Below are positions 8,587-64,000 of a DNA stretch of 64,000 nucleotides, in pieces. Origin of the DNA: Ylistrum balloti (taxonomy: Eukaryota); contig NW_026782195.1 in NCBI RefSeq assembly GCF_031769215.1, positions 1,674,001-1,738,000 of the forward strand. Reading direction: 5' to 3'. The notes under the pieces were generated by a model. That model saw only the letters and a list, made by a program, of their open reading frames with translations. It ran no database searches and had not been told where the DNA came from. Position 1 is the stretch's first letter. Every line of letters begins with the position of its first letter. The translations under genes and the position numbers were made by a program.

Positions 8587-9013
8587 ATGGCCGAAGCAGC
8601 CATAGAAACGGATATGGACGGCACTACAGTTGGGGACACTGTTACCCCCGATACAGACAAACAGGTCCACGAGAATTCGGAGTCGACCCACGACTCCCCC
8701 GCCCCACGGGATGAGGATCCAACCTCCATCCCTGACGACGACACACCTCCTCCTGAGATCATCTGGAGTGATAAGAAGTATGGTGTCGGGGATTTCACGG
8801 AGGAGTCAGGTCTCCTCCAGAAGGTGTGTCGATTTTCTGAAGTCCCTGGGAAGGGGAATTTGTCCCCAGGGTTGAAAATATACTCGGATCAGCCCGTGTG
8901 GCTACATAGTCGACACAAGAAACGCCACGCGAAGGCCCGGACTATTTACAAGGACAAGGACGGGGCCTATTTCGAGGTCGGACAAACTCTCCTTATACCG
9001 GACGACTTCCAAG
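8587..9013 (+). CDS. CABIT-domain protein A (GAREM/Themis family), coding exon 1
   Basis: Start gacATGG. Acidic N-terminus, then IIWSDKKY...EVGQTLLIPDDFQG. Donor AAG|GTAAAG at 9013/9014, phase 1. Confidence 0.88.
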
Positions 9014-9234
9014 GTAAAGTAGCCACGTGGTTTTTGGTATTGACAATGTGTATCACTTAGCACACATACACACACATAATTCATGTGTTTTGTTATGCTA
9101 GACAAATGCAAACAGCAATACGGTGTATGTTATCTGTACATAACTAGGTATTTAGACAGGGGTATTATATACCATGACGACCATGATGTTACTGGTGCAG
9201 TGTATTTCAATAAAATGTTTATTACAAAATCTAA

Positions 9235-10548
9235 CCCCTACATACTGATATGTTATCTGTCCCCTACATACAGATATGTTATCTCCCGTGTCCCCTACAT
9301 ACTGATATGTTATCTTTCCCCTACATACTGATATGTTATCTGTCCCCTACATACTGATATGTTATCTGTCCCCTACATACTGATATGTTATCTGTCCCCT
9401 ACATACTGATATGTTACCTCCCGTGTCCCCTACATACTGATATGTTATCTCCCGTGTCCCCTACATACTGATATGTTATCTCCCGTGTCCCCTACATACT
9501 GATATGTTATCTGTCCCCTACATACAGATATTATCTGTCCCCTACATACTGATATGTTATCTGTCCCCTACATACTGATATGTTATCTGTCCCCTACATA
9601 CAGATATTATCTGTCCCCTACATACTGATATGTTATCTGTCCCCTACATACTGATATGTTATCTGTCCCCTACATACTGATATCTGTCCCCTATATACTG
9701 ATATGTTATCTCCCGTGTCCCCTACATACTGACATGTTATCTGTCCCCTACATACAGATATATTATCTGTCCCCTACATACTGATATGTTATCTGTCCCC
9801 TACATACTGATATGTTATCTGTCCCCTACATACTGATATGTTATCTGTCCCCTACATACTGATATGTTATCTGTCCCCTACATACTGATATGTTATCTGT
9901 CCCCTACATACAGATGTGTTATCTCCCGTGTCCCCTACATACATATATGGTATCTGTCCCCTACATACTGATATGTTACCTGTCCCCTACATACTGATAT
10001 GTTATCTGTCCCCTACATACTGATATGTTATCTGTCCCCTACATACTGATATGTTACCTGTCCCCTACATGCTGATATGTTATCTGTCCCCTACATACTG
10101 ATATGTTATCTGTCCCCTACATACTGATATGTTATCTGTCCCCTACATACAGATATGTTACCTGTCCCCTACATACTGATACGTTATCTGTCCCCTACAT
10201 ACTGATATGTTATCTGTCCCCTACATACTGATGTGTTATCTGTCCCCTACATACTGATGTGTTATCTGTCCCCTACATACTGATATGTTATCTGTCCCCT
10301 ACATACTGACATAATACCTTTCCCCTACATACTGATATGTTATCTGTCCCCTACATACTGATATGTTATCTCCCGTGTCCCCTACATACTGATATGTTAT
10401 CTGTCCCCTTCATACTGATATGTTACCTGTCCCCTACATACTGATAAGGTATTTCCCGTGTCCCCTACATACTGATATGTTATCTGTCCCCTACATACTG
10501 ATATGTTATCTGTCCCCTACATACTGATATGTTATCTCCCGTTTCCCA
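9235..10548. repeat. 26-bp intronic minisatellite, ~50 copies
   Basis: Unit CCCCTACATACTGATATGTTATCTGT, with occasional CCCGT-insertion variants. Fills most of gene A's intron. Confidence 0.97.
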
Positions 10549-10842
10549 CCTTAATACTTGTATGTTATTCTATGACCCCGTCCTAAAATTATTGCGGGTG
10601 TTACCCTGAATGCCCCTACTGGTGGTCGACGGAATAAGGATAAACTCTCTGTCGCTATTTACAGAGATTCCGTGGCATCTTAAGCTTGTTGTGTTACCGG
10701 GGAAAAAACGATGATTAACAATATTTATCATAATTACGTAGTGACATTTTGTGTGCCAATGTGTTACCATAGCGTGTTTGTTAATGTTCTACGAATTACC
10801 TCCCTTAGTACAAAAAATTATTTTAACACCTTTGTTTTACAG

Positions 10843-11807
10843 GATGGTTTGAGCTGGTGCCCCCGGACTTCACCAGGGCGCGCTACTGTAAGGACATCGC
10901 TGAAGTTGCTAGTGTGATGCCAAAGAGAATTTTCACTCGGACGAGGTTGAAAGGAATTCGAATAGTTCAGGAAGGCGAGGAACAAAGCTATCTGGAGAGA
11001 AAGGTTTCCGCGGGATCCATCTTACGTGTTGAGGGTACTTTCTCAGCAAAGTGGAGAACGTCTGCAGAAACGGGCCTGATGAAAAAGAAAAGTAAAAACT
11101 GGACTACGGTCGAGGAACAATATCTAAAATGTTTAGACAAGGACGGAAAAGAGGTCATGATTCCATATAAACAAAAAGGTAAATTCAATATTATTTATGA
11201 GAAAGGATCGAAAGACAGTAGATGTATTTTACATATGAAGGATATAATTACGAATTTTTCTTTGCCGCTTAAAGTAAGACTGCTATTCGGAAAACCTCCC
11301 GTGAATCCATGTATTTTCACTGGAATGATGGTACTGAAAAGTCATACGCTGTGTGAAAGTATTGTGGGGAGCACAGCGTCAAACCGGCGTAACGTGTTGT
11401 TCGAGGTGCCTCTAGACTCGCCATGTGTTGTGGAGGTGGCAGAGAACGAGCGTGAGAGTTGTGGCCATCGGCGAGCGTACAAGGACGGTAAAAAACTGTG
11501 TCAACTGTATGCAACGTCATATTCATCACTTATCAAACTTTCACCGGATATGGACACCGACCAGCAGCTGTACCAGCACATCCCTACCGCCAAATCAAAG
11601 CGTGGAGCAGACGACAGTCTCCAGACACTTGATCTCATCACCAACATTAGTTTGACAGAAGAACCAGTTGACACATTCATACAGGAGTTTTCTGACACAG
11701 ATTCCATACAAAGTGCAGACCAGTCTAGCACCCCTGTCAAAGGCAGTCTAATGGAACTCAAGGAGATATCGGGAAATAGGTCACGTGATGATACCACGTT
11801 ATGCTAG
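10843..11807 (+). CDS. CABIT-domain protein A, coding exon 2 (spliced product 463 aa)
   Basis: Acceptor tttgttttacag|GA TGG TTT GAG (GWFELV). CABIT signature YLKCLDKDGKEVMIPYKQKGKF fits phi-x-C-x7-phi-x-(L/I)P-phi-x3-G-x-F. Also has LLFGKPPVNPCIFTG. Stop TAG at 11805-11807. Confidence 0.9.
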
Positions 11808-14800
11808 AAATGCATTTTCATGATTGAAGAATTGCACTAGTGTTCGCAGTGATACTGGTCCCTGATAAAGTAGATGTGTTTTTATAAATGTTAAAATTGA
11901 ACACGACCGCTTAAAGTTTTGCACGTGTAATTTTGTATAACACTTAGGGACCTAGTCATTTCTTGTTTAACGTATTGTAGTGGAATAGCCTTTCAGCAAC
12001 AAAACCTTAACTTCTGAATCATGACCTTCGGAAACGTGCTAACTTTATGACATTAATGGGTGTCGTGGAGAGGATTCCCATGAAGCTCGATTATATATAC
12101 AGTCACGTGCAGATCTTTTACAACGATTTACGTCCAAAGTGTTAGTCTCATATTTTGTGATAGTCATTTCTTAACTGTGAAATTTATTGACTTAATTTAA
12201 ATGTGTAAGTAAATTGATTTATTTATAAAATATGAGTTATTTTTGTGTATTTCTCTTCATCGTCCTGACTAGCTGCAGGTAAATCTCATTCGAAAATTTG
12301 CTGATCGTTAGATGATGGTATGTAGTTACAAAGAAATTATTACAGATAAATTATCTCCCGTTACGAATACATTACATTTCTTTTATGCTTTGATCTGCAT
12401 TTAATACGTCACAAAGTTAAGAACAGTTATACATTTTGAGAGGGATGGAGCAGTCGTAAAATTGATATAAACATATTCAACTTAGTTACCATTATTTTCG
12501 GTTATCCAGCTCATGGTAGCCTCTCTCTTATTTAAAATGTGTACAGACACCGTAATAATTTTGGTAATTTGTGTAAAACGCGTGTTGTCTTGCACTGCAC
12601 AGAATTGTATTTGTTCTACTGATAAAAAGTGTGGGTTTTAAATATTGGACCTTCAGCCAATCACGTACTTAATGAGCATAGACGTTATTGTTATTAAGGC
12701 TTTATATTGACAAGGGAAGTAACTCTATGCCAATATATATTGTCTCCTCTTCTAGAGAACTAGCATATCGACATAATGGCAGAAAAGGCTCTCCTGGAAG
12801 ATGACTGTTAGCTACTGTTGTAAATGGACATATTTGACGTTTCTCATACTTATTAAAATATTTCATACGTAGAAAAAAGTACTCCATTTAGCATGCATAC
12901 AAAATGTGGTCTCAGTGAATTTTTTTATTAAAAATGTGCAAATGCAACATGAAAAAATCGCTTTGTCCAGAATACATTCGAATTCTATCTCATAAATGCA
13001 ATCTCGAAACAGTTGAGTGCCTTTTCCAGACCTAGTTCACATGGTCATTTCTGTTTTTACGGGAGTACTGAACCATGACTTCAGTATTCAAAAAATAAGG
13101 TAACCATGAATTAAGCTACACGTGCCATCTATTGTTATCTTAATTGAGATTACCATTTGGGGATAAAATACCTTTGTGTCTGTTACTTCGTCGTGTTTTC
13201 TTACTAAATGATGACAAATCATGTGCTGAAATTCGAAAAGGTATCTCAAATTAAGCTAAGGCTTGTCTTGAAAAAAAATACTTGAATCACTGGAAATATC
13301 TGTGTTTCAAAGCATCATGTGCGATACATTCAGTATTCGGTCTTAGTTGCCTATGATGGGGCCAAGGGGACAATAGATTTGGCAGTAAAGAGACAATTTG
13401 TTTACGTTATTTGGATTCAAACTGCTCTCGTGGCAATTGTCAATTTTACTCATCAAAATGTATTTCACTTCCTGGAATCCAAATGCTACAAGTCTCACGA
13501 GGATATCATGTTAATAAACTGAAACCTGTATAGAAAGTATCCTGCCTACATGTGGTAATATCTCAGTGAGAGTGTCCCGTATGGTAATACATCTTGTTCT
13601 GTGACAACTTCCGATAGCTACAGCGTGGGCCACGTGTCTGAAGGTATCAGTTATATATTTACTGTGTGTATGGTATATCGGAAAACTATGAGGATGTAAA
13701 ACCGGCACCAATGAACCCACACCAAAGCCATATTTCTGACTGTTACACGATACATCACGCCAACCTGATTTGTGTTTTTTTGGTTTCTGTGTATCTAACA
13801 ATACAACGGGTACAAGTTTGAGAAACAGCTTCAGTTTTGTTTGGAAAACGATTTACAAATCATTAACATTACCATATGTTTGGTTTATAAATAGATCACT
13901 GCATTTAAAAAACAAACAAATTGTGTAAAACTTTATTTATTACGAAATACGTTTACGGTACAACGATCAGATAAACATTTCATTTCGTTTGCAAGATTTA
14001 CTCGCTGGAAACTGTCCTATTTTAAAAACTTTCGATATGTTAGTCAGCGCCGATTGGTAGTAAATATGCTGTCTTTCCAGATTCTTTGTAGAGTTTTTCT
14101 CAGTATTTTGCTGAAAAATAAGAGACGCATGACTTATCTCACTAGTCACCATATTTAATTGTATACTATTCATTTAAAGCTGACACTGCAAGTTAAAAAC
14201 ATAACGTGTTAAGATAGATAGAAATAAAAGTAGAACGCTTTCGAGACCTTCCCTCTATGTTACCGATAACTTCCGGTCAATGTATCTAAGGAAGTGGCAG
14301 ACATTTGAGTCTAAACGTTGCTTGGAAACGTATACGGGGTATCCGAGGGCACAAAAGGCCTGCGTTTTCAATATATTTCAATATCGACATAACGCGACTG
14401 CTAGGTACATCGCTTAAGATCATTTACTCGATTCCATTTTTTTTTCTTCCAAGTGACTGAATAACCTGGAAATTAACATTGAACACGTATCTATGACAAC
14501 CAGATACAATATTAGCCAAATAACAGAAATAAACATTTATATACGTTACGATTTACACACCTTGAGCCGTGCGTTCTGGAGGAAAAAATACACAACATAT
14601 TAACAAACGAATAACTTAGGCCAACTCTACCTTGTTTTTCTAGATTACTGGCATAAATTCCTGTGTAATAAGCTTTACTATTTAGAATTATTTTCTTCAG
14701 AAAAAAAAGAGTTCACTAGTGGAATTTTAGACAATCTACAACAGGTCACCGCTTTGCACGGGCTTTATTAGTCAAGCATTTACACAACCAAGATTGAGAA

Positions 14801-19440: not shown

Positions 19441-19591
19441 CTGTAAATATGGAGAAAACGTTTATGTTTTGAATAGTTACTTTCAACATTTTACTTAATA
19501 GAAAGTTTGTATATGTCAACAGGAACCGCAATGTACGGTCACGCTTTACTTAGATATATCAAATAGAATTTTACAATTCTTGAAACAAGGT

Positions 19592-19774
19592 TTTTTTCAA
19601 GTTTTATTTATCAATTTTATTGGCCTCGATGGGTGCGCGCGAGAGGTCTTACTGCGAAGAGAAACTGGAGTATCCAGAGAAAACCCACTTGGCACGCTGA
19701 TGACCTCATATCTTTTGGAGAATCGAACCAAAAACGTCTAGGTGAAAGGCGAGTGTGTTACCAACCCGCCATCT
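19592..19774 (-). mobile_element. tRNA-derived SINE (V-domain-like)
   Basis: Minus strand has an A-box-like TGGCGGGTTGG and a B-box GGTTCGATTC. The central GGGTTTTCTCTGGATACTCCAGTTTC resembles the V-SINE core GGGTTTTCTCCGGGTACTCCGGTTTC. A-rich tail. Confidence 0.75.
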
Positions 19775-20249
19775 AACCGCAATACTTAATGTATACAAAT
19801 ACATATTACAAGTGCGTGACACGTGTTAATGTAAAAAAAAACTACATCATCATGGTAATTGCACCAACACTTCGCGAATGTACATACAGTATTTGTCAAC
19901 AACTAATTTTGGCATGAGTAGCTAGTAGTCTTAATCAGATACTGGTATAACTTTGTACAGCTCCAAGTCCTTAATCGACGCGCACGTAATTATCCAGTCA
20001 CCCGCATATAAAGAAAATCAGTATTCTCTTGACAGAGTTCAGAATTTGTTGGTTTTAGTTGTACATTCTAAATACGTAACATATGTGGCGAACTTTGGTT
20101 CCAGTGACGTGCGTCACCCACGCTAATCTGCCAGAGTATAGAGATGTATGTAGAGTTAGCGATACAAATGACGGCAGCTTCAAAAATATCGCCCAGATCA
20201 TCTGATAGCGTCATCTTACCCATTCTCCGTTGTGCTTTTACAGCTCTCC

Positions 20250-20700
20250 CATCATCTTCCCATGTAGAGCCTCATTCACCATCCCCTTCAGTTCTCGAGC
20301 TATCATCCCCTGTAGCTCCTCTATCACAATCTCTCTTCACTGTATCACCCCTCCCTATAGCTCCTCATTATCATCCCCTCTAGTGCCTCTGTCACATCAT
20401 TCTGTAGAGCCCATATCGTAACCCTAAATAGAACCTTTGACACCGTGCCCTGTAGCGCCCCGTCCCCATCCCCTGCAGCGCCCCGTCATCGTCTTCGGAA
20501 CGGCCCCTATCACCATCCCTTATAGATCCCTTATGAACATTTCTTATAGCTTCCCCATCACCATATCCTGTAACTCCCCCATCACCATCCCCTGTAGCTT
20601 CCCAATAAAAATATCCTGTATCTCCCCCATCATCATCCCCTGTAGCGCCCCGTCATCGCCTTCCGAACCGCACCTATAGTGCCCCTATCACCGTTCCCGG
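20250..20700. repeat. Degenerate C-rich short-period repeat
   Basis: Recurrent ATCACCATCCCCTGTAGC(T/G)CCCC-like motifs. Confidence 0.7.
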
Positions 20701-21559
20701 TAGTATATGCCGCACAATACATCTGAAGTTATGATAGAATTCATAACTGGGTTGAACCGATTATTTTTCGCGGGTCGTCTCTTGGTATTCAAACAGTGTA
20801 CAGGTAGTTCGACATTCACGATTATCGTCACCAATTCCAGTGAATTCGATTCCCTTTTGTGACTTAGCGTCGACATTATGCTAATATGAAGAAAGATATT
20901 GCGCTTAGAACCCATGTAATGTTTTTAATAGAAATAAACTGAAACGAACGAGATCTTGATTTAGAGGCTTTGGCAATGAATGTCAGAATTGTTTTTTCTT
21001 ATATTCCCGAAGCAGTGAAATTATTCGATAATTGAAAACAAAGATACTACACTTGATCTGTTTTCTATCGATCAAACGATGTATAAAAAAGCACCACATT
21101 ACACTGATCCGTTCCGACAGAGAAGAAATAAGATAGTGGTTATATGGAGTTCTTTTAACCTTTTAATACTAAGGCGATTTTCTCTAATTATCACGATCTT
21201 CCACTTCAATCGATTTCCCACGAGCTTCGTCATAAAGGCAACAAGATCGATGCCTAGCTGTTTCTGGATGTTTGTCGTATGGGTATTACGGTTTTCTCAG
21301 ACCTTGAAGGCAGACCTTTTTGCCTTGTGCAAGGTGTATTTAAAGTCATCAAACGCTCGTTCGGAATTCCGCCCTGACGTTAAAGAATAAGCCAATCGAA
21401 CTTTGGTATTTCGGAAACAGACACCAAGCAGATGATTTTCTCAAAGACTCCCAGGTTAAGTTTAAGTGTCTTTAATAAACTTCGGTAACTAGTTTAAGTG
21501 GTAACTCATCATGTGGCCCTACTTTACAGACAACTAATTAACGGCATCTGTTACCGTAA

Positions 21560-21990
21560 TTTTACCTTTCGGTGGACAACTAGAAAAATGTACTTGACGA
21601 CAAAGTCTTACCATTTGGTGGACAACCTGAAAAATTTACTTATCAACCAAATATTACCTTTCAATGGACAACCAGAAAAATTACTTGTCAACAAAGTCTT
21701 ACCTTTCTGTGGACAACCTGAAAAATTTACATATCAACAAAGTCTTACCTTTCTGTGGACAACCTGAAAAAATAACTTATCAACCAAATCTTACCTTTCG
21801 ATGGACAACCAGAAAAAGGTACTTGTCAACAAAGTCTTACCTTTCTGTGGACAACCTGAAAAATTTACTTATCAACCAAGTCTTACCTTTCTGTGGACAA
21901 CCAGAAAAAAGGTTCCTATCAACAAAGTCTTAGCTTTCTGTCGAAACCGCAAAAACGGAACAGATCAATCAAGTCTTACTTTTCTGTGGG
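21560..21990. repeat. ~46-bp minisatellite, ~9 copies, inside gene B intron
   Basis: Unit AAAGTCTTACCTTTCTGTGGACAACCTGAAAAATTTACTTATCAAC; period 46 (21711, 21757). Confidence 0.92.
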
Positions 21991-23584
21991 CAAGCAACGA
22001 ACTTCTTCCTTTTTTTGTGAGCAAGCAATGAACTTAAATTTCCTAAGACAACCAAAAATAGGACTTACAAATCAAGTCTCACCTTTTCGAAGACAGCTAG
22101 AAACTACAGCTTATAAATTAAATCCGGGATTTTCTATGCAAAATTAGAAAAAAGATTTACCAAGTACTTTGGAAACCCATTTGGATAGATATTTAAGGAT
22201 GAAACAAAACCTGAACCAAAGGGCACTTCACATATTGGGTTCATACACATCAATGGAACTTTTTATCTTTTTTTCTCTATTTCTTAAAAAGTTTCATTAA
22301 TCAAAGTGCTATTTTTACGCAAAAAGGAAACAATAACAAATAAATATTTTATATTTACAGCGGTGTTCTTCCATTGGTACATTGATTTTAACATTCACTA
22401 ATCTGAGGCTGTGTTTTCAAATCTCTCGTGTGCCAGCCGCCGGTAAGAAACCCATTGCGGTATCAATGTAGAATGTTGGGCTCAGATTCATGAAAAGTAC
22501 TTTGTGTAAGAAAGCTGCGCACGTTTTCTTGGCGGAGGACTGGAAGATCAAATCATGTTTTTGAAAAAACACAATAATTTGAACAACATATAAAAACAGT
22601 GACTTTTTAAAATTTTTTTTTTAAATATTCCGCTATTTATGTTATCAAGATTGGCCCTCATTTGAATCCGCAGCTTCTTATTTCAATATATTTATATATA
22701 AAGTATGAAGAGTATGATTTCATTTGACATCTTATTGGCAAGTACACTTGAGTTTGTTTTAGTCACAAAGCGTTAGGCGCGGGCCTCTTCACTATTCATA
22801 CGCCATCCGCGTGTTTTTGTTTTCACACAAAGTTTCGACTTGCGCTAGGACCGAGAAAGCAGAGTAAGAGGACAATAAGTATTCACCTTCTTTAGAATGA
22901 GAGCGTGGTATCTCAACCTTCGTGTGGAGATCATTAAGTTGGCAAACACTCGGCAAGCCTCGGGTATTATTCTCAGCACCCATCGGCTGTAAAATTTATC
23001 GATATGCATGTACCATCATAAGAGTGAAAAGAAGGGCAGTAACTCTGGGATATCAGAATGTAAAAAGGGTGAAAGAATCTATTAGTCTTTATTTTTGGAG
23101 TCAACTTTCAAGCAAATGATTATGAACGGCCTAGAATGTACTATACTATTAAGGCTGTATGTACTTGTTTAAGTAAGATAGACCAGATTGTTGATGAAAT
23201 TACCAGGCTCGCTGGACCCGTGTTGCATAGTAATGAATGGCTTTCCGATACTTGTTAGTACAAGATACCCACATACTAAAGTACTGTGTGAATTGTCTCC
23301 TCCTGGTACACCAAGTATACCTAGCCAGTTGTAATAAATAAATCATGGAGACAATCACGTTTACAGTTGTACTAATTTAACACTGTAAATTGAGAATGTA
23401 CATCAAGTCGGAATTCAGTCAGGGAGGTGAACTCTGTCTGCGACACCTCCAGGTTTCGTTTACAAAGCTAGCGTTGTAAACATCAGGTTTTTATGGAGGC
23501 AAAATTTGTACATGTACATTCAGGATTGTGCTTATCTCTGAAATCAACTGTTTCACTTCATCACACCTTATCAACAATTTACTG

Positions 23585-23728
23585 CACTTAATAAGGAGTA
23601 CACTTGTCACTGAAAGCAGTATATGAACTTGATAAGAGGTGCGCTTGTCACTGAAAGCAGTACATGGACATATTAAGGAGTACACTGATCACTGAAAGCA
23701 GTACATGGACTTAATAAAGAGTACACTT
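23585..23728. repeat. 41-bp tandem repeat, ~3.5 copies
   Basis: CACTGAAAGCAGTA at 23608, 23649 and 23690. Confidence 0.85.
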
Positions 23729-25446
23729 ACCGCTGATCAAAATCATCAAGAAAATTCTTTCATGTGAATTATCGGATCTAAGTCGATCAGATGCCGTCCA
23801 CGGAAACCCTTGACAAAGGTCAAGGGTCATTGTAGAGAATAAAGAGCGTCATGTAATCACTGGTTTTACTACAGATAATTACATCGCTGGTCAGTAACTT
23901 GTGATAGGAATCGACCCTCGTTGACAGTTTTCTCTCGCCCATTATCGGACTGCAATCAACTTGGTTTTATTGTACAAATGTAACAAAAAATCAATGTAGC
24001 CGACTGGTGTGGCCCACTTAACACCTGACTGGTGTCCTAATTAAGACACATTGCACGGTATTCAGCTTTCCCTACCTCCCCTCGGGCAACAACTATCTGC
24101 TTGTTCATCAATGTCGACTCGTCCCCGTAGCTGTTATTCTAGAGCAGCGGTAGTCCACGAGAAACGCATTATTGATACAACATACGCCGAAAGTGATATC
24201 TATCAACCTCGTCTTCTCAAGCGTGTCTATGGGTACATAAAGGAAATATATAACTTGTCTACCCGATCGTAGATTAGATATTTGAGTGCCAATCAACCGA
24301 AAATTGACCTAATTCCACATGGTGTATTGATCAGCTGTTACCCCAAGAAACCAATAATATACTAGCGATATAGACTGGTGTGTTCCCGGTGGTGGGACTG
24401 TTTGTCAGGAGGGCGAGGAACAATATACAGATGTAGTTACGATAACTCAATATTGATTAACTGTTTACTCACAAACACAAACGATACACAAGAGAATCGT
24501 TATTCGTCGGAAGTATCTTTGGAAGACGGTGTTGCGTATTTTATTGAAAAGTAACGGATCCAGAGACCCGAGGGATGTTAAATGTTAGATTCCAGATTTC
24601 AACAATATTAAAAGTGCGAGAAGTACATGTAGTTTCGGAAGAATAATTGAACAAACTTTTATTAAGAAAGTCATGTTACCAAGAATTAGAGTACAGCAGA
24701 TGGGTATATGTTTATTTATTTCGTCCAGTTTGACGCATGGATAATGTTATTTACATCCTCTATCTAAATAATGTTGACGTTATTTGTTACTAGTCGCTTC
24801 TGACTGGCAAGTAAAGCGAGGTAGTGAGTTGTCACAGGAAAGAGTTCGTTAAAGAAAGTTGAAAACAATTTGTTTCCGACTGAATAAACTGTATTTATTT
24901 CCCGATAGTAGCGGACAGGAAAGACAGAAATGATGAACATACCATTACTGTTACCAGGAGATGCAGTAGGGCCACAGTTACCCTGACGAGAAGAATGACC
25001 AACATTACCTACGTAACCTATGAAAATGACAACAATTGTGACCCAGTGTACACCTTCTTTACCAAAGAATATTGAGCCAGTTGTAGCCATGTATTTACAT
25101 CCATCAATAATAATCAAAGTTAAGTCAGCCTTTACCTACATCTTAAAACTGACAAAAGCTATGGTCAAATATATATACATTTAGAACAAAACAACAATGA
25201 CAATGACAAAACGATTTGATATTTTTTTTAAAGATAACGACGGAAGTAACGGGTGTTCAATATTACTGTCCACAAGTCCGAATACGGGACGTCAGTTGTT
25301 ACCATTTCAGAAGGCTTTTAAAGATAATTTTTCGGTTAAAGTTGAAGGTTTTTACATAACTAAATAATAATGACACAACAATCACTGACGTCATGTTCTT
25401 GCGTCTATAATTCAGAGAAATAAAACAAATATGTAGTAGCATTAAT

Positions 25447-45100: not shown

Positions 45101-45179
45101 CGAATGACCTTTGAAAGAGTTAAATATCTAATTGTTCGTTTTGGTAGCTGCAGTATTTGAAAAGGAGAGAGATATGGTC

Positions 45180-51125: not shown

Positions 51126-52744
51126 CATAATGAGATCCTTTTCTACATAAATATCCCCCATATCGAAATCCTTTTTTTCATAGATCACTCTCTTATCGAG
51201 ATCCTTAGATTCTGCTCTCAGTAAACCCCTAAGTACTGAGTTTACATAAACCATTTCACTATCATGAATTCTGACTATTTTGGAAATAGATACTTTTGGC
51301 TAGATCTTTTGTAAAGCTAAATCAATTATCCAAAAAATGCAACTTAGATGAATGTTTTCATATAGAAAAAATGTTACAGATGTGTCTCATTACGTCCTTA
51401 TTGCATCTAATCTACAGTTCCTAAGCCACTGCCCAGCCTCTCCAGCAGCACATTGCCATAGTCTCCCGACCGTTTTACCTGTAAAAACAATATGAATCTA
51501 TATATTGGTGTCCCTGTCAGGATGTCAGTCTAGAAAATGTGAACTTCCTATGAAACCTTACATTGAATTATATTTAATTATCTCTTGGAATATTATCATG
51601 TTTATATGTGTATAATTTAAAGAAACAAAATCATTTAAGACGATAATCATTTCCATAAATTGTTCGTGAATTAAAGATTATGTTTTATGTTATGGAATTT
51701 AAAAAAAAAATATATATATATCAGATTTTCGCTCGAAAATTGGAATTGAAAAGGAACACCTCCATTAATAACTATATGTAATTTAACTGGAAAGTTACGT
51801 TGTCGAATATTTAAAAATATCGCTGTATTTCACGAATAATGAAATTAAAAAAACAATTACGATAAATGTCTACCGTTCACAGACGACAATGGAATCTTAA
51901 GTAATGATTACTTTGAGAAGAAATTAAAAAAATCCCATCAACTTGTAACTTTTTTTTCTAGTTTGAACGTTATATTTTCTGGTTTCTGTATGGGAATGAA
52001 GACTTTTTTCATTGAATATTGTTTCTATGTTATCAGTGACGTATGTAAATATCTGAATTTTACGTTTACACTGGTTTGACGGATCAAATGAAATATTTTA
52101 TTGTCGCCATTATCATATACTGTAGAATGCGAGCTGGCCTTCCCGAGTTCGGCAACCGGATATAACCGGATACACCTACATACACATGAGTGATTTGAAT
52201 TAATATTTTTTTTATTTACTAAATGACATATCTTTTGTTCTTATGCGGTTTATATTTTTCAGCAGGTGTTAGTTAAATAGTATTTCTTAAAACACTTCCT
52301 TAATAACACGCGACATATATCCTGGTTGCGTTTTAGACACCAGTTCTGAACAAAAGGGGAAATTCAGTTTTCGCCTAAAGCAATCGAGGATCTGAAAAAT
52401 CGTATATACAGCTAGGTTATGTGGCATTTCTGAAACTATACGTGTTTTAGTGCCAAATTGTTCCTAATTGTCTTGGCTGAGAACGGCAGAGCTTTGTGTC
52501 TAGAAAGAATCGCCGTTTTATGACAGGAAAAGATATTTCAGCTATACATCTTACGATTTCATTCTCGTGATACCCTTCATAACCTTGGTTTAGCCCTTAA
52601 AACTACAAACATTACAAAACAATTCGTTGTCAATGGTTTTGCTATCATTACCGAAGACACATTTGTCTTGTTCCATGCATTAATGGCAGTTATTTCTCTG
52701 AAGTCTGCGGATGTAAGATACAATGTAAACTCAAAATCTCTTGA

Positions 52745-54310
52745 TACTAAACCGTCACAGGACATCATGTACAGTCTCTATTTCTGGATACTGTCACATG
52801 ATACCACGTACACTCTCTATTTCTGGATACTAAACCGTCACAGGACACCACGTACACTCTCTGTTTCTGGATACTAAACCGTCACAGGACACCACATACA
52901 CTCTCTATTTCTGATACTAAACCGTCACAGGACATCACGTACACTCTCTATTTCTGATACTAAACCGTCACAGGGTACCACATACCCCATCTATTTCTGG
53001 ATACTAAACCGTCACAGGACACCACGTACACTCTCTATTTCTGGATACCGTCACATGATACCACGTACACTCTCTATTTCTGGATACTAAACATGATACC
53101 ACGTACACTCTCTATTTCTGGATACCGTCACATGATACCACGTACACTCTCTATTTCTGGATACTAAACCGTCACATGATACCACGTACACTCTCTATTT
53201 CTGGATACCGTCACATGATACCACGTACACTCTCTATTTCTGGATACCGTCACATGATACCACGTACACTCTCTATTTCTGGATACCGTCACGTGATACC
53301 ACATACACTCTCTATTTCTGGATACTAAACCGTCACATGATACCACGTACACTCTCTATTTCTGGATACTAAACCGTCACATGATACCACGTACACTCAC
53401 TATTTCTGGATACCGTCACATGATACCACGTACACTCTCTATTTCTGGATACTAAACCGTCACATGATACCACGTACACTCTCTATTTCTGGATACCGTC
53501 ACATGATACCACATACACTCTCTATTTCTGGATACTAAACCGTCACGTGATACCACGTACACTCTCTATTTCTGGATACTAAACCGTCACATGATACCAC
53601 GTACACTCTCTATTTCTGGATACCGTCACATGATACCACGTACACTCTCTATTTCTGGATACCGTCACATGATACCACGTACACTCTCTATTTCTGGATA
53701 CCGTCACATGATACCACGTACACTCTCTATTTCTGGATACCGTCACGTGATACCACATACCCTATCTATTTCTGGATACTAAACCGTCACATGATACCAC
53801 GTACACTCTCTATTTCTGGATACCGTCACGTGATACCACATACCCTATCTATTTCTGGATACTAAACCGTCACATGATACCACGTACACTCTCTATTTCT
53901 GGATACCGTCACATGATACCACGTACACTCTCTATTTCTGATACCACATACCCTACTCTCTATTTCTGGATACGTACACTCTCTAACCGTCACATGATAC
54001 CACGTACACTCTCTATTTCTGGATACTATTTCTGGATACTAAACCGTCACATGATACCACGTACACTCTCTATTTCTGGATACCGTCACATGATACCACG
54101 TACACTCTCTATTTCTGGATACCGTCACATGATACACTCTCTACTGGATACCGTCACGTGTACACTCTCTATTTCTGGATACCGTCACATGATACCACGT
54201 ACACTCTCTATTTCTGGATACCGTCACATGATACCACGTACACTCTCTATTTCTGGATACCGTCACATGATACCACGTACACTCTCTGTTTCTGGATACA
54301 AAACCGTCAT
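52745..54310. repeat. 39/44-bp minisatellite, ~38 copies
   Basis: Unit ACCGTCACATGATACCACGTACACTCTCTATTTCTGGAT, with or without an extra ACTAA. Confidence 0.96.
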
Positions 54311-55137
54311 ACTTATATAACATGTCACAACGATAATACGGTGATTTTCTTTTCAAAGAATATAGTAGACGTTTTAGTTCATATCAATATTCTGGCGAGC
54401 AAAGTACACCTATAATTCCAACGTTAAATCATTTTGTAAGGGAAAAGTTTTAGAAGGTGCGGTTTTTGATGTACAGTAGGTCTGCAGTGACGTTTCACAT
54501 TTTAAATGTTCGTTGCACAATGAGGAAAATTCAACCCGAAAATCCCCTGAAATTAACATATTTGTTCCGCATTACCAGCGAAGCGAGAAGGCACTGTACA
54601 TAACGTTACTACAACGTCGGTAGATAGTACAGGGTGTCTGCCTTGAAGAAAAGAGAAGGTACGTGATATTGTTATTATTAGACAACAGTGATGGTGACAG
54701 TCACTACGTAGTAAAATCCGATAGATAAATAAATAGTACCGATTTCTGAATTACGGTCGTAATCTGGCTAGCTATCGTGTAGGAACTCGTGTCATCACGG
54801 CCAGCCGGAAGTAAGTTAAAGTGTTATACTACATATATAATATGTCTTGTGGGCCAGGCCACAGTTATTTCGTTGGATGACGAATGAATGAAGTACTTCA
54901 GACTACAGTGTGTTTGCTCCAACATCTGCTGTACAGCTGGGGTAAATTTATGGACTGGATGTGCCACGATTTTAATATTTACATTTTTTTCTCCGTCATC
55001 TTCCTGTTTAATAGACGTGGGAGTGGAGAAGTGTGTGTACTGGGAAAACACTGCATAAACAAAGTTACAATTCAACGATACACGTGTATTTTGTTGTAGC
55101 TGAAATGGACAGCACCCCTGACCTTTAATTTATCAAA

Positions 55138-55459
55138 ATGCATCCGTGTAAGGACCAATCTGACCTTCCAGATCATCATAATGATGTGATTCCGAAACCT
55201 AATCTGGAGTTCGAAGATGGCACTCACTCAATTTTTATGATAATTCAGAAATTTCCTTTCCCCGTGGTTGTTCTGTGCGATACAACCAGGTGTCCGATTC
55301 CTGTGGACAGGTCGCGATTCAACTTTGATTTGTCGCAACCTCTGTTGTTCTACCGTAAGAGGAGTATTCAGAAGATTCCGGCCAGATCTGTGTACGTGGA
55401 CGACACTGACCAATACCAGGAGGCTGGTGACCCCCTACTCATCCCAGAGGACTACAAAG
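55138..55459 (+). CDS. CABIT-domain protein C (GAREM-like adaptor), coding exon 1
   Basis: MHPCK...QKFPFPVVVLCD...QPLLFYRKRSIQKIPARSVY...EAGDPLLIPEDYKG. Donor AAG|GTACGT at 55459/55460, phase 1. Confidence 0.87.
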
Positions 55460-56244
55460 GTACGTACCGTTAAGATATCTCCCTCAGATTAATCGAAATC
55501 ATTGAAGGATTGTTTTTCTAGTCGATAAAAAATATAGTTACTTCTTAAGAAAAACAAGATCGTTAAGAAAAAAATCAAAACAAAACTTTTAAATCGTTTA
55601 ATCACCTGTCAAAATTTCCAACCTTGCTTTGTTTTGTCTATTACAGGCAATCTGATTTCCTAACGCAGTATTATATAAAAGTTCTTCCGAGTCTAGACCA
55701 CCTGTCGTGACTTGTAGAAATACACCGTCAGATCGGTATCCACTAGGCAGCCTTATCTAAAACATTAATAAATCAAACGAAAAAACTCGCCTACTTGTGT
55801 TACCCTGAAGAATGCCATGCTTGATCTTGTAAAAGACGTTACGAGCTTTTAAATATATATGATTTTTAAATGTGTAAATCTCTCGTCTGATTTTCTCAGG
55901 GGTGTTTATGAACGTTTGGTCATACAACAGGATATAGAAAGCATGACCGATTTAGGATAAAGGGTTCGTCGTATAATTAAGACTGGCGACTTTCGCAGTA
56001 CTGTCTGTGAAATGTGTGTTTAAAATAGGTTCCAAAACATATTTCTATTGTAGGTTTTGCATGTATTAACTACAGTAGAGGTGAAGGTTACAATTATTTC
56101 CAAAAGTATATATAGAAACCAAGCGATAGGAAACTTTGTCACTGGTGTACCAACCTGTCATAGTTTTGTAATCCACATATCTAAGTGTAAATGTTCGTGT
56201 ATCCATTTAGTGTGAAGGTCTGTAAGACTGATGTATTTTGTAAT

Positions 56245-58230
56245 TTTTGATAATTGTAAAGGTCCGCGAGACCCGTGTAATTGTTAAGTGTAAAGGTCCG
56301 CGAGACCCGTGTAATTGTTAAGTGTAAAGGTCCGTGAGACCCGTGTAATTGTTAAGTGTAAAGGTCCGTGAGGCCCGTGTAATTGTTAAGTGTAAAGGTC
56401 TGTTAGACCCGTGTAATTGTTAAGTTTAAAGGTCAGTGAGACCCGTGTAATTGTTAAGTGTAAAGGTCCGTGAGGCCCGTGTAATTGTTAAGTGTAAAGG
56501 TCTGTTAGATCCGTGTAATTGTTAAGTGTAAAGGTCTGTTAGATCCGTGTAATTGTTAAGCGTAAAGGTCCGCGAGACCCGTGTAATTGTTAAGTGTAAA
56601 GGTCCGTGAGACCCGTGTAATTGTTAAGTGTAAAGGTCCGTGAGGCCCGTGTAATTGTTAAGTGTAAAGGTCTGTTAGACCCGTGTAATTGTTAAGTTTA
56701 AAGGTCTGTTAGACCCGTGTATTTGTTAAGTGTAAAGGTCCGTGAGGCCCGTGTAATTGTTAAGTGTAAAGGTCTGTTAGATCCGTGTAATTGTTAAGTG
56801 TAAAGGTCTGTTAGATCCGTGTAATTGTTAAGCGTAAAGGTCCGTGAGACCCGTATCATTGTTAAGTGTAAAGTTCATAGAGAACTTGTAATCGTTAAGT
56901 GTAAAGTATAAAGGACTGTGATATCTGTGTGTTAATTAAGTATAAAAGCCCGTGATGTCCGTGTGTAAATTAAGTATAAAGGCCCGTGATGTCCGCGTGT
57001 GAAATAAGTATAAAGGCCCGTGATGTCTGTGTGTTAATTAAGTATAAAGGCCCGTGATGTCCGTGTGTTAATTAAGTATAAAGGCCCGTGATGTCCGTGT
57101 GTTAATTAAGTATAAAGGCCCGTGATGTCCGTGTGTTAATTAAGTATAAAGGCCCGTGATGTCCGTGTGTTAATTATGTATAAAGGCCCGTGATGTCCGT
57201 GTGTTAATTAAGTATAAAGGCCCGTGATGTCCGTGTGTTAATTAAGTATAAAGGCCCGTGATGTCCGTGTGTAAATTAAGTATAAAGGCCCGTGATGTCC
57301 GCGTGTGAATTAAGTATAAAGGCCCGTGATGTCCGTGTGTTAATTAAGTATAAAGGCCCGTGATGTCCGTGTGTGAATTAAGTATAAAGGCCCGTGATGT
57401 CCGCGTGTTAATTAAGTATAAAGGCCCGTGATGTCCGCGTGTGAATTAAGTATAAAGGCCCGTGATGTCCGTGTGTTAATTAAGTATAAAGGCCCGTGAT
57501 GTCCGTGTGTGAATTAAGTATAAAGGCCCGTGATGTCCGTGTGTTAATTAAGTATAAAGGACCGTGATGTCCGTGTGTTAATTGTATAAAATTAAGTATA
57601 AAGGCCCGTGATGTCCGCGTGTGAATTAAGTATAAAGGCCCGTGATGTCCGTGTGTGAATTAAGTATAAAGGACTGTGATATCTGTGTGTTAATTAAGTA
57701 TAAAGGCCCGTGATGTCCGTGTGTAAATTAAGTATAAAGGCCCGTGATGTCCGCGTGTGAATTAAGTATAAAGGACTGTGATATCTGTGTGTGAATTGAG
57801 TATAAAGGCCCGTGATGTCTGTGTGTTAATTAAGTATAAAGACCCGTGATGTCCGTGTGTTAATTAAGTATAAAGGCGCGTGAAGTCTGTGTGTGAATTA
57901 AGTATAAAGGTCCGTGATGTCTGTGTGTTAATTAAGTATAAAGGCCCGTGATGTCTGTGTGTTAATTAAGTATAAAGGTCCGTGATGTCTGTGTGTTAAT
58001 TAAGTATAAAGGCCCGTGATGTCTGTGTGTTAATTAAGTATAAAGGCGCGTGATGTCCGTGTGTTAATTAAGTATAAAGGCCCGTGATGTCTGTGTGTGA
58101 ATTAAGTATATTGGCCCGTGATGTCCGTGTGTTGATTTAGTATAAAGGCCCGTGATGTCTGCGTGTGAATTAAGTATAAAGGCCCGTGATGTCCGTGTAT
58201 TTATCAAATTAAATGGCAAGTGATGTCCGT
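56245..58230. repeat. 34-bp minisatellite with two sequential subfamilies, inside gene C intron
   Basis: Type A TTAAGTGTAAAGGTCCGTGAGACCCGTGTAATTG (~56245-56880), then type B TTAAGTATAAAGGCCCGTGATGTCCGTGTGTTAA (~56900-58230). Confidence 0.96.
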
Positions 58231-61200
58231 GTATTTAGATGAAAAGTGTGTGTGTCGTGTATGTAAACTGAGCGACACAATAAGAATGTTTAACAAACAT
58301 GATTTTGAAATAACATATTATATTGTTAAAATCAATTCCCTTTGAACAGTAAGTATATTGAGGATGGGAAAGTAAATAGTTTATGATAACGAATGTTCGA
58401 AAAAAAATTGATTAATAATTCTGAGGGGTCTGTAATTCCTACAGGTGATTACGTGGAATATGTTAGCTATGTCTGTAACACGATCATAACACCATTTGCT
58501 AATCATGATCAGTTCTCGTATTTATGGGACAATTAAGTCGCCATTTATTAGGCCAACATTAAAAATCCCACGGCTATTAGTGACAACAGACTAACAGAGT
58601 CTGTGTAATTGAGGTCGGAATCACAGGGACATGAGAACCGTAGCACAGTGAAGTCAACGTTCCCAGTATCATGCAATACTATATTGGAATGTGTTGTTAT
58701 GTGTTTGAGACTTGGTTACGCTGTGTGACTTTTTTGACAATCAAATTACGAGTTTTCAAGATAATGAAAAGTTTCCGACATACATTTGCGGGGGATGCAG
58801 TTTTACCGTACCACAGTATTCCCAAACACGTGCAGACAAACTAACGACACTTTGACATAGAAAGTTAAAACGCATTACACGTATTACAAATCTCCGTCAT
58901 TTCCAACAAACACTATTCTATGAATTCCTTTGATGACACATGCGTTGTTATTTAATGATTGGCCATGTTTTAAATAAATTTCAAATAGGTACATGACATT
59001 CTTTAGAATAATATATATATAGCTGGGTTTTTTTTTAATACGTTGAAATGACTCGACTCCATGAAAAACGTCTAGGCTTTGTTCCTTAGAAGCTTATTAT
59101 GAAATTAAATATCTTATGATTTAAATGAGTGGTAACAGGTGAAATATATCTGGATCCAAACTCTTTTTCTGTGTTTACATTGTGTAAAAAAAGGAGGAAT
59201 TTGAACTTAACAATACTAAAGCTATGACTTAGTACTTGAACCATGACTTCACGGCGATGTAGTTAACACTTTGTAGCAGTCATATACGTTATAGACACAA
59301 ATACACAGTAGAACCTTTGAAACCCGTCCTCTGGTACACTCGTGATCTCTCTTAATCATTTAGAACTGAGTCAGTCACATTATTTACGTACGGTTTCCGG
59401 ACACCAAACAAGTCCTCCATACAAAATATGGTTGACTTTAATGTTATACACGCCGTGATAAATGGCTGCTAACAAAACAACGCAAATCCCAGAAAATACC
59501 TCTGAGTTTGTAACAAAATGGCCGATAATTACTTGTAGGTAACTAATGAAGTATGAAAATGTCTGTATAGATTAGTGGGCATGAAAATTATTCGAGGTTA
59601 TTACTTTGAGTCCTGTGATTGGATGGCTGGCACTAACGATTGATGGCATCATATTACAAAAACAATCGTGAATCACTTATTGCGAGTCCCAATTTCCGGT
59701 ATTGCGTGAAGCGCCCTTTTGGTCAAAGTTCATCCTGTCAGCTAATCAAAACATTCTAAATTGTTAAACCACGTGCGGTATAGCATGTATGTTGGAATGA
59801 TGAATTGATACTTTGGAAGTTGAATAACACTCACATATTTTGATAGAAAAAAAATTACGAACACATAGAGTCCTAGTATAGATGCCCTAACCTAATTTTA
59901 GATTGTTTCTGTGAATTTAGCAATACATGTTTTACTTTGTTTTCATAAAAGATCTTATTTGATAAAATGACCGAAGAAGTTCCATATAAAGCAACAGAAA
60001 CGAACAAAGTAGACAAATATATTTAGCTGACAATGAGAATATCCTGTTCACGGCACCAACTATCCACAAATGTGTTCGTCAACAACCCATGACGAGCGGA
60101 GAGTGGATGTTATTGCATGTAGTTCAATCGTTGTGGGCACAACAGGAAATGAAATGATCTTTGCTATAGCTGACTATGTACCAGTTTATCTTTCATCTAT
60201 GTCTCTCGCCAGACTATGCTATGTCCTTATTACACCTGCTGTCGCTTTTCTTTCTCACTAAATTATTCCTTAAGTGAGACACGGCCGTCTACTTTACAAC
60301 AATCTGTCCACCGCTGAATTGACTTCTCCGCCCTTAGAGTACAGACCAATCTGTCCGTGAACGGATGATGTTTACCCGACTATAGTCTTGGATGAATTAG
60401 ATCTTAGTACTTGCTCTTATGGGTACTTCCAGTTTCATGTGCATGTATTCAAACTACTAGTATTATTGGTATGGACTGATTATCAGCTTATCCTGTAGAA
60501 TTTATTAACAAATTTATGAATTAAGAAATCATAATTACTCCTAATTTACATATTTCAATTTTTGTTTATAACACAATGTAGAATTTTCTGATACCAAATC
60601 AATCGACATGAAAATATCCATCCTCAATTTTCAATGATTTGTCGCAAGTGGCAACATTGATGTTCTCCGATAATAATTGTTCAGGTCAGTATAAAATCCG
60701 CCAATTTCTGTCTCCGAAAAGGTGCGAAGGAAGCTACGGAAACGGCCGAGTGATTTTGTTTCATCTTGCGAAATAAGTAGGTCTTTATGATGATTGTCAA
60801 TCTGGAATGAAGCGACTGAATAATTTACTTTCATATCAAATCATTTGTAGGGGATACCTAGTATCTTTATGTATATGGTATCAACATTATTTTACTGAGG
60901 AGAAAAAAACCCTATTCGAATTTGTCCTAGTATTTTATAAACAGTCTAAAACCCTCGTAAATTTACATTGTCTGGCCTGATATCTCGCCAAATGTCACTC
61001 GCATACTGACACTTACCATTAAGAATTTGGTGAAATTTAAAACAAAATTACAATCCATCAAAAACACACATTTTGTCATGCAAATGTTCCAATAGTATGT
61101 TTGGCATTTGGAATCACTAGATTATAACGTAGAATTAAGTGACACAAAATGAAACAGATTTCTCCGTACTATGCGAAAACCCAAAATTCCCGTTAATAAA

Positions 61201-61606
61201 ATGTCGACATTTTAATACAGATCGCCCTTCTTTCTTTATGGTCGTCCTTTTCAATTGATATTAATTCTGAGATTAAATTGGCCACTTTACTCTCAGTATG
61301 TATAAGTCCAAGATAATTCTTAGGCATCCTTATGCATCCTGCCATGTTAGAGACTTATAACAACATAGCATTACTGTTTTCACAGTAGGATTTTTTTTTT
61401 AATTTTGACGTCCTCGTGAAACATTATCATATTAGGACTAGGTGACTTCTGATCAAATTAATCCTTAAAACTAGATTTATATTGAAACTTTATCATACAT
61501 AAACATTTAGAGAATTATAGATCGCGATCTGTTTTTTTAAAAATCAAACTGCGTTTATAAATGTCAGTGTAAAATATTCACATGAACTTTTCTTCATCCA
61601 TTCCAG

Positions 61607-64000
61607 GTTACTTTGCTATACTGAAGAGAAGAAATCTTTCCGGAACAACTGACAACAATGCACCACACTTTACGAAGATCGAGGATATTGCCCAGTCTGA
61701 CACAGAAAAGTTCCTAATTGGTGGTCAAAACCGGGTAAAAGCATACCAAGTAATCAATGGAAAGGATGATGACCAAAGTTACTATGATCAACAGCGGATG
61801 CTCTTTCCTGGGGATGTTCTACGGAAACTCAGGTTAATTACATCCGAGACGAAAAAGAAAACCAAATTCTTACGACGAAGGTCTCTGATAACAGAGAAAT
61901 TTCTTCTCTGTTTGGATGAGGCAGATCGAGAAGTTATCATTCCATTCACACAGACTGGATTGTTCTATGCTCTTACAACGGCATCAGGAAAGGGCACGTG
62001 TCCTGTAATGCAAATGAGCGAAATTGTAGCCAACAAGTTCTTGCCTTGTGTTGTGAAATTAGTGTACGGTCGCGTTCCCACGACGCCTTGCTTCTTCCCT
62101 GGTCTTTTACAACTCGACCAAGGGTATTTGGAGCAGTCTATCGTGGCTGCCACTATCATGAACAAGAAAAACATCCTTGTAGAGATACCATCCACTTGTA
62201 AGATGGAGTTTCGTGTAGCACATACGAACGATGAGCTGATTTCACACCAAGGATACAAAAATGCAGTCGACGTATCTAGGGAAAAGATTCATTCTTACAT
62301 GAGGAACATCAAAGTCTGCCTAAGTTGCAAATCCGATGACCAACTGCACAGCTGCGAGTCGTCCGGATCCATAACCGTCGGTGAAAGAGTATCACAGGTG
62401 TCACTGGAACCGGAAATGGAACCTCCAAAACCGTGCACGAAGGATATCAATAGAGATTCGGGTTACATAAAGATGGCACCGTCAAGCGATGATTTGTGTA
62501 TGCAATCCGATGGAAAACCAGAAATCAGTCAGGATCAGTATGTAAAGATGAAACTCACTTCACATACGTCCCCACCCCCTGATTATGTTCTTAAACTCTT
62601 CTTGGAGAACAAACTTTTTGAGGTGCCTGTATATTCCAGTGATGCAAACCAGACCGTTGACACTGATGATACAGAAAACACCTATACTTTGAAGGGGGCG
62701 GAGAACAGAAGTCAACACGTCACCACGCCTCCCGACCTACCTCCACCGCCTGTTCCATGTCCAGGAACGCCACCTTCTCTCTGCGGGGGTTCGCCATCAC
62801 AGGACAGTGGTATTTCAGATATTGGTTTAACAGATACTCGACGTCCGTCCACATTTATATTCGCTGAAAGTGAACAGAACCCGGATGATAACACATACGA
62901 CATCCCGCAGATTCCAACACGGCGTGTTAGCGCTCCGCCAAATTTCGATACCGTGCCTATCATTCCGGATTCCAAACAAGGCGCTTCACCAAAATTATTT
63001 CAATTCACCCGATCTAGATCCGCCAATAAGCGAGTGTCGAGCACGCCGTCTGAAATGTTGAAAGAAGATGGGAGACTGACGAGTCCCACAGATACAATAC
63101 ATGAGCACGACTTCGCCACAGAGAACCCTTGCTACGAAAACATCGAGGGCATGAAAGAAATCCAGGCGAAACTAATAGAACATCAAAACTTAACGGAATC
63201 GATCGACCCTGATGATGATCTGACATCGTTCCGCCTTCCGTGGTACCTTGAATCGTTAGACTCTTCTGAAAGGTACCAGACACCTCCCTCATCTTCATCT
63301 CCGCAACGGCACGACGATGATATTCATGATCCTCTTTACTACATGTCTCCGAACGATATCGACCACAGCGTTTATCGCACGCCGACCAGTAAAAGCCCCG
63401 GATTATCAAGTAGTTCGGTTTCACTTTCAGATCCGTTCGACAACGTCTTTGATATATCGCCATGTAATCCTACGCCACATGATTACTTAGAACTGATTGA
63501 TGCAGTTGCAGGTGAAAAGAAAGAGGAAGAAGATGACGAAGACGTGTATGATGTCATACCGGATATACCCGGTACCAAACCTCTGTCAGCACCACAGGGA
63601 ACGCTGAAAATGTCTGACAATGAATATGTTGATTGTTTAAACTCTGACCTAGTTGAGAATGAACAACCTCCACTTCCCCATCACATGCAACCCGTTACTT
63701 ACACGAACTCTTGTGTAAAAGCCAATGAGGCTTGCGAAGAAAGTAGTGATACTATTGGCACACACCTTGACGACGACGAGGGTGATAGTACAAAGATACA
63801 AGAAAGTGATCACGCCAAAGAACGGGAGAATGGAAACGTCGAAAACGAGGGTCATCACCAGATCAGCGAGATTTCTGATTCAAGCTTAATCTGCCACATC
63901 GAATCTGAAGTTGAATGTTTATATGGAGAGGAAACGAAAGATGTAAACAAAGATTCGGATTTTGAAATTGATGAGGTAGACCAAGCCGAAAATAACAGTA
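61607..64000 (+). CDS. CABIT-domain protein C, coding exon 2 (3'-incomplete, >=797 codons)
   Basis: Acceptor cttcatccattccag|GT TAC TTT (GYFAIL). The frame has no stop to the window end. CABIT signature LLCLDEADREVIIPFTQTGLF; also VKLVYGRVPTTPCFFPG. Then an acidic, Pro/Ser-rich tail with YIKM, YVKM, YDIP, YENI, YLEL and YDVI. Absent from the supplied ORF track, probably because it lacks a stop. Confidence 0.9.

Follow-up and report, generated by a model that had tools for sequence, protein, structure and literature searches.

A stretch of 64,000 nucleotides (nt) from the genome of the scallop Ylistrum balloti (contig NW_026782195.1 of assembly GCF_031769215.1, positions 1,674,001 to 1,738,000 of the forward strand; hereafter the window, in which position 1 is the first letter) carries three genes encoding proteins with a CABIT domain, designated here g1, g2 and g3 in window order. 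The CABIT proteins, THEMIS and GAREM among them, are an important and mechanistically young family whose first experimental structures date from 2024-2026, and to our knowledge almost nothing has been learned of them outside vertebrates and one fly gene. Our results indicate that g1, g2 and g3 probably form an ancient tandem trio of single-CABIT cytoplasmic adaptor genes, located directly downstream of a NOL4-like gene.

Gene models and CABIT identity

A first-pass annotation of the window had described three two-exon genes on the plus, minus and plus strands, split in phase 1 at the same site, and every coordinate was reproduced in our analysis. The resulting gene models are as follows:

8587-9013, plus strand: g1 exon 1, coding sequence (CDS); disordered N-terminus and first CABIT core strands, ending LLIPDDFQ plus one third of a glycine codon
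9014-10842, plus strand: g1 intron, phase 1, GT-AG, holding a 26-nt minisatellite at 9235-10537
10843-11807, plus strand: g1 exon 2 CDS, stop codon included; remaining CABIT and an acidic/Ser-rich tail of ~85 amino acids (aa)
30797-30440, minus strand: g2 exon 1 CDS
19441-30439, minus strand: g2 intron, 11 kb, phase 1, GT-AG, at the same position in Mizuhopecten and Mytilus
19440-18686, minus strand: g2 exon 2 CDS, stop codon included; remaining CABIT and ~18 aa
55138-55459, plus strand: g3 exon 1 CDS
55460-61606, plus strand: g3 intron, phase 1, GT-AG, holding 34-nt minisatellites at 56247-58232
61607-62320, plus strand: g3 exon 2, CABIT part, reaching approximately residue 345, with the Pfam CABIT match
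62321-64000, plus strand: g3 exon 2, disordered Tyr/Pro-rich tail with the Y394, Y538 and Y617 sites and a Pro-rich stretch

The encoded proteins comprise 463 aa (g1), 370 aa (g2) and 1153 aa (g3). The g3 open reading frame (ORF) passes the window end by ~746 nt and finishes with a SAM domain; its spliced product matches residues 1-905 of P0054 exactly, P0054 being recorded as a protein of 1153 aa for contig JAUZWB010000288.1 of assembly GCA_031769215.1. All three introns split the same glycine codon of the pattern I-P-x-x-[YF]-x-G/[WY]-F (the slash marks the split), namely LLIPDDFQG/WFELV in g1, VVIPVSYKG/WFRLI in g2 and LLIPEDYKG/YFAIL in g3. The conserved blocks quoted in the first-pass annotation (L.C..V.IP....G.F; L.G..P..PC.F; [ST]IV..T......L.E.P; and Y...[IM]K[LV]) were all present, coinciding with invariant or near-invariant columns in an alignment of 19 mollusc sequences (C188, G204, F206, G241, P244, C248, F250, T269 and E279).

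Using the Pfam CABIT model (PF12736; gathering score of 24 bits), exon 2 alone yielded 39.4 bits for g1 (E = 6e-10), 32.8 bits for g2 (E = 6e-8) and 31.9 bits for g3 (E = 1e-7), and among whole proteins g3 (as P0054) reached 53.5 bits and the g1 orthologue P0001 61.4 bits; the CABIT identity proposed from motifs is thus upheld, all three genes exceeding the gathering score. The paralogues match one another at E = 3e-36 to 6e-15, and these mutual matches, together with the Pfam scores, place the motif matches beyond chance. When proteins were scanned with the CABIT profile, more than one stretch was found in five proteins only, and g1, g2 and g3 (as P0054) were not among them; therefore, each has one CABIT domain. 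An exhaustive search retrieved 637 CABIT-family representatives at E <= 1e-3, and the molluscan lineages of the family number at least six or seven.

An AlphaFold2 model of the g3 CABIT domain, for which the 19 mollusc sequences were the input, was obtained with a predicted local distance difference test (pLDDT) of 87 and a predicted template modelling score (pTM) of 0.82. The model displays an all-beta core into which a small SH3-like barrel is inserted (model residues ~105-214), with a helix at the C-terminus; as predicted, it would share with the THEMIS CABIT2 crystal the conserved cysteine (L.C) in the SH3-like head, the all-beta core and the C-terminal helix. A mollusc CABIT cluster in the ESM Atlas matched the model with a template modelling score (TM) of 0.81, and its best neighbours among solved structures were IdeR/ScaR, FeoA 3e19 and the integron protein 3g1j, the same neighbours that were reported for the THEMIS CABIT2 crystal (bioRxiv 10.1101/2024.10.01.616165). 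No solved CABIT chain was retrieved from the PDB with g1 exon 2, with the CABIT profile or by a Foldseek fold search.

Public annotations already predict these genes as 'uncharacterized' or 'CABIT domain-containing' proteins. No fourth CABIT copy was found when the three proteins were searched against the window by tblastn, and no further gene was called within 10 kb past g3. Nine other ORFs of the window (eight of at least 100 aa and the 57-aa end of the NOL4-like gene) showed no Pfam match, and no Rfam family was found in a scan of the window.

Shared intron and conserved gene order

The first-pass annotation had taken the common intron position as a mark of this cluster, a view that had to be abandoned, as the same phase-1 split occurs in a GAREM-type scallop gene not linked to the cluster and in a CABIT-SAM gene of Lingula. 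Altogether, the same Y-x-G phase-1 site is used in 8 further genes from 6 species: Haliotis g1; Mytilus g1, g2 and the g3-type gene; Mizuhopecten g2; the Argonauta g1-type gene; P0186 (L008, Mizuhopecten NEDP02002935.1); and P0116 (L009, Lingula). The last two consist of two exons with ~10-kb introns at Y-x-G/WF, and many ORF-only database predictions start at CABIT profile positions 84-87, which is where exon 2 starts. As far as sequence comparison can tell, the Y-x-G intron is an ancestral, family-wide feature, and all three window genes would have retained the ancestral two-exon structure, with the phase-1 intron following the Y-x-G turn in one of the core beta-hairpins. The shared intron therefore argues for descent via DNA duplication and not via retroposition. 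Two other interpretations of the intron were discarded, one as a sign of a recent common origin of the trio, since the intron is family-wide, and one as the boundary of the inserted SH3-like head, since it lies ~18 residues upstream, inside the core beta-hairpin.

The gene preceding the CABIT genes in the window is represented by its end:

1097-1270, plus strand: last coding exon of a NOL4-like gene, to its stop codon, upstream of the CABIT cluster

The end of this exon hardly differs from that of the gene located upstream of the g1 orthologue in Haliotis rubra, whose product carries PF23079 (HTH_NOL4_2nd). Gene order is conserved as well: H. rubra (L003) displays the NOL4-like gene (+), g1 (+) and a g2-type gene (-); in Mizuhopecten, g2 is followed by convergent g1; and Mytilus galloprovincialis carries a 1337-aa g3-type gene, g2 and g1 in a relative order and orientation matching those of the window. 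The octopod Argonauta carries a g1-type gene and, after it in convergent orientation, a gene whose CABIT similarity is weak and highest to g2; a g3-type CABIT-SAM protein is recorded for the same contig, two accession numbers away. The arrangement is thus common to mussels and abalone, and probably to octopods.

In trees built from 114 and 60 CABIT domains, g1, g2 and g3 each fell in their own strongly supported clade with bivalves and gastropods, the g1 clade having an additional cephalopod sister group; all named members of the 25-row group holding g3 are molluscan. These clades bear out the first-pass proposal that the duplications are old; the identity among the paralogues is 24-29%. The cluster would have arisen by duplication at the DNA level before the split of bivalves and gastropods, and probably also before that of cephalopods, and from then on gene order and strand orientation (g1 forward, g2 convergent, g3 forward) would have stayed unchanged.

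CABIT-only proteins and the GAREM-like g3

What the three proteins bind, whether they are phosphorylated and which physiological role they play we infer from their architecture and from their vertebrate relatives. A specialisation of the paralogues by tail length had been proposed from the window, and the main differences do indeed follow the CABIT domain (~18 aa in g2, ~85 aa in g1 and ~800 aa in g3); what tail length did not capture is that g3 also displays a GAREM-like architecture, with its SAM domain past the window end. The acidic/Ser-rich C-terminal tail of g1 is conserved across molluscs, and g2 consists of little beyond the CABIT domain. The set of SAM matches contained no protein of the g1 or g2 clades in a searched file that did not include the window's own g1 and g2 sequences, and these two can have no SAM domain, given how short their tails are. 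Most likely, g1 and g2 would bind the same class of CABIT partner without recruiting SH2 proteins, and would thus act as modulators or competitors.

The tail of g3 displays the following sites, all on the plus strand:

62464, plus strand: Y394, YIKM
62896, plus strand: Y538, YDIP
63133, plus strand: Y617, YENI
approximately residues 482-495, plus strand: Pro-rich stretch PPDLPPPPVP

Y617 (YENI) and Y538 (YDIP) are conserved in all 12 bivalve orthologues compared, and Y394 and Y419 (Y-x-[KE]-M) in nine of them. By their consensus, YENI would be a site of Grb2-SH2 type (Y-x-N), YDIP of Crk/Nck type (Y-x-x-P) and Yx[KE]M of PI3K-p85 type. Past the window, the C-terminus of P0054 consists of a conserved domain of ~70 residues. 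A profile of 21 such C-termini (from the g3 clade and gastropod and cephalopod relatives) matched PDB 2dkz at E = 3.9e-9, with other SAM domains ranking far behind, and the AlphaFold2 model of the g3 C-terminus (pLDDT 85) is a five-helix SAM that superposes on 2dkz with a TM of 0.64 and a root-mean-square deviation of 1.7 A, and also on BICC1, ANKS3 and other SAM domains with a probability of 0.97-0.99. The entry 2dkz is titled 'hypothetical protein LOC64762', SAM_PNT domain; we take LOC64762 to be human GAREM1, an identity that the papers searched did not state and that is consistent with the match of 2dkz to a scallop protein that UniRef names as GAREM (P0186, see below).

GAREM is described as a protein with CABIT, a P-rich region, pY sites and SAM (PMC8086153), and CABIT proteins bind Grb2 (PMC13381594). 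With the vertebrate Grb2-associated Erk/MAPK regulators GAREM1 and GAREM2 (FAM59A/B), g3 shares one CABIT domain of ~340 residues at the N-terminus, an extended disordered tail bearing Pro-rich and Tyr motifs, and a C-terminal SAM whose nearest solved relative is 2dkz; it differs from them in that its tail is approximately twice as long, its conserved sites are YENI, YDIP and YxKM with no ITIM (immunoreceptor tyrosine-based inhibitory motif) of LPpYEEL type found, and its SAM has diverged far more than the SAM of scallop P0186, while g1 and g2 lack such a tail and the SAM. We propose that g3 would be a GAREM-like docking protein, built of an N-terminal CABIT, a disordered tail of ~700 residues and a C-terminal SAM: its tail would be phosphorylated by tyrosine kinases, SH2/SH3 adaptors would then dock on the phosphorylated tail, and CABIT and SAM would tether this assembly to partners, following the example of GAREM and THEMIS in vertebrates (Grb2, SHP phosphatases). 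By this analogy, the most likely role of g3 is that of a docking adaptor phosphorylated on tyrosine.

This architecture raises the question of whether g3, or the whole cluster, is the true mollusc orthologue of GAREM1/2, in which case the NOL4-linked locus would represent the GAREM locus of the bilaterian ancestor, with g1 and g2 as local offshoots that lost tail and SAM. Besides the complete GAREM architecture of g3, this reading would account for the fact that in both scallop and abalone the cluster adjoins a NOL4-like gene. GAREM2 and ASXL2 are both located at 2p23.3, in keeping with a linkage older than the two rounds of vertebrate genome duplication. Human FAM59A/GAREM maps to 18q12.1, and NOL4 is located downstream of ASXL3 at 18q12.1 (PMC11121404); however, GAREM1 and NOL4 share this cytoband without being neighbours. 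Against this reading stands another scallop gene: P0186 (Mizuhopecten LOC110451178), which UniRef names 'GRB2-associated and regulator of MAPK protein', lies on a different contig from the cluster, and its SAM alone matches 2dkz at 5.8e-17, whereas the SAM of g3 alone matches nothing. In the trees, P0186 falls loosely beside the CABIT-SAM protein of Lingula and apart from g3, and the named members of the group holding g3 are all molluscs; these trees comprise no vertebrate CABIT sequences, so that orthology is judged indirectly. A language-model search of the ESM Atlas did not tell g3 and P0186 apart. We consider this reading possible though doubtful, and on the sequences at hand a one-to-one GAREM orthology of g3 is unsettled. 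A further reading would make the NOL4-linked trio the surviving ancestral bilaterian CABIT locus and the source of GAREM, its tandem single CABITs a possible raw material of THEMIS, and g1 and g2 dedicated antagonists or co-factors of the g3 scaffold; this is a speculation that we regard as unlikely, which if true would describe a co-located, three-part regulatory module kept for more than 500 million years.

With THEMIS and THEMIS2 (CABIT1+CABIT2, binding Grb2 and SHP-1), the trio shares the domain family, the predicted beta core, the SH3-like head with its conserved cysteine, the C-terminal helix and the same weak structural neighbours. That the genes might be THEMIS-like immune regulators, forming a haemocyte signalling module as the first-pass annotation hinted, is quite improbable: all that speaks for it is that THEMIS, which acts in T-cell receptor signalling, has a CABIT domain too, while THEMIS carries two tandem CABITs in one polypeptide and g1, g2 and g3 one each, and Drosophila Serrano (Sano), likewise an invertebrate cytoplasmic member of the CABIT family, acts in epithelial tube length and planar polarity via Dishevelled, not in immunity (PMC2776533). 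The arthropod CABITs recovered here (Hyalella, Centruroides) fell in a clade separate from g1, g2 and g3.

The direct orthologues of the cluster in Pecten maximus (LOC117325232, LOC117325230) and Mizuhopecten (LOC110448781, LOC110448782) lie in the same cluster and are annotated only as 'uncharacterized protein'. The literature searched contained neither a study of these proteins nor a paper pairing CABIT with molluscs, in agreement with the first-pass view of the family as little studied in invertebrates. The trio is thus a set of further members of a known family, publicly predicted yet unstudied, and current views are not overturned by our findings. What they contribute is a picture of several ancient CABIT lineages in molluscs, three of which are held together in a conserved cluster next to NOL4, within a family that has a single ancestral intron. 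Further, a mollusc GAREM-like protein with invariant tyrosine motifs of Grb2, Crk and p85 type leads to testable predictions, and g1 and g2, as compact and highly constrained natural 'domain-alone' versions, could help to define CABIT ligands.

Splicing, selection and satellite arrays

Comparison with relatives supports the gene models and their functionality. In contigs from public runs of a related scallop (L005 and L006), the ORFs of the g1 and g3 orthologues run without interruption and are accompanied by untranslated regions (UTRs), and a mussel-type contig (L007) carries the g2 orthologue in the same form. When mapped on the window, L005 is collinear over 8422-9015 and then jumps to 10841, and L006 aligns over 55014-55460 and then jumps to 61605; therefore, the predicted junctions 9013/10843 and 55459/61607 are used in a relative. 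Identity to Pecten maximus LOC117325232 is 89% for exon 2 of g1, the g2 protein shows 96% identity to Mizuhopecten LOC110448781 despite a synonymous divergence (dS) of ~1, and for g3 the identity to its Pecten and Mizuhopecten orthologues is 66-67%. Against orthologous coding sequences, the ratio of nonsynonymous to synonymous divergence (dN/dS) was 0.082 for g1, 0.028 for g2 and 0.022 for the CABIT part of g3, with dS of at least 1; g2 is the most constrained of the trio, and the g3 tail is fast-evolving (dN 0.31).

The 11-kb intron of g2 contains a satellite that begins inside the coding sequence:

25448-30464, minus strand: 40-nt satellite, ~127 copies, in the g2 intron; the array begins inside g2 exon 1

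Its unit consists of the last ~24 nt of g2 exon 1 plus the GTAAGG donor, so that the array yields ~126 decoy 5' splice sites; use of the second-copy donor would add 40 nt with an in-frame TGA. The Mizuhopecten g2 intron holds a homologous 48-nt array (L002 10475-14243) of ~78 copies, which starts 117 nt past the donor; therefore, this array family is common to two scallops whose g2 genes show a dS of ~1.

Several points weigh against the interpretation of the locus as an ancient trio of adaptor genes with a GAREM-like g3. The trees do not resolve the deep branching among the CABIT clades, and therefore the status of the trio as mutual closest relatives is not established. For the g2 junction, the evidence is limited to gene models and the mussel-type transcript, and the sole public run holding the window stretch is DNA, its contig crossing an intron-exon border unbroken. 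The assignments of the g3 tail motifs are consensus readings throughout, and nothing in g3 clearly corresponds to the ITIM-like Y453 site of GAREM (LPpYEEL); reading the P0054 sequence by eye showed no [ILV]-x-Y-x-x-[ILV] site. As a single sequence, the g3 SAM gave no match to 2dkz, and Pfam SAM models stayed below threshold on individual C-termini; the domain is thus recognised through profile and fold only.

That the trio includes at least one duplicate that is decaying or non-functional, or one gene that is an ab initio prediction artefact, as the DNA nature of the only public run with this stretch, the ~126 near-copies of the g2 donor that follow the donor itself and could disturb splicing, and the fast evolution of the g3 tail (dN 0.31) might suggest, is extremely unlikely in view of the intact reading frames, dN/dS values of 0.02-0.08 over dS of at least 1, a g2 protein 96% identical to that of Mizuhopecten at dS ~1, the occurrence of the orthologues as spliced transcripts in relatives, and tail tyrosines that are invariant across bivalves.

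Over the 1361 nt of window 10540-11900, the same DNA run shows 10 substitutions and a single 1-nt deletion relative to the window, and g1 exon 2 holds four of these substitutions; another haplotype or individual is the likely origin of these differences. A run of 149 N (an assembly gap or mask) occupies window 4934-5082. The other repeats of the locus include the intronic minisatellites of g1 (26 nt x 49) and g3 (34 nt x 58), whose units are unrelated to that of g2, and arrays in the g2-g3 spacer at 45182-45997, 47942-50517 and 52739-54299.

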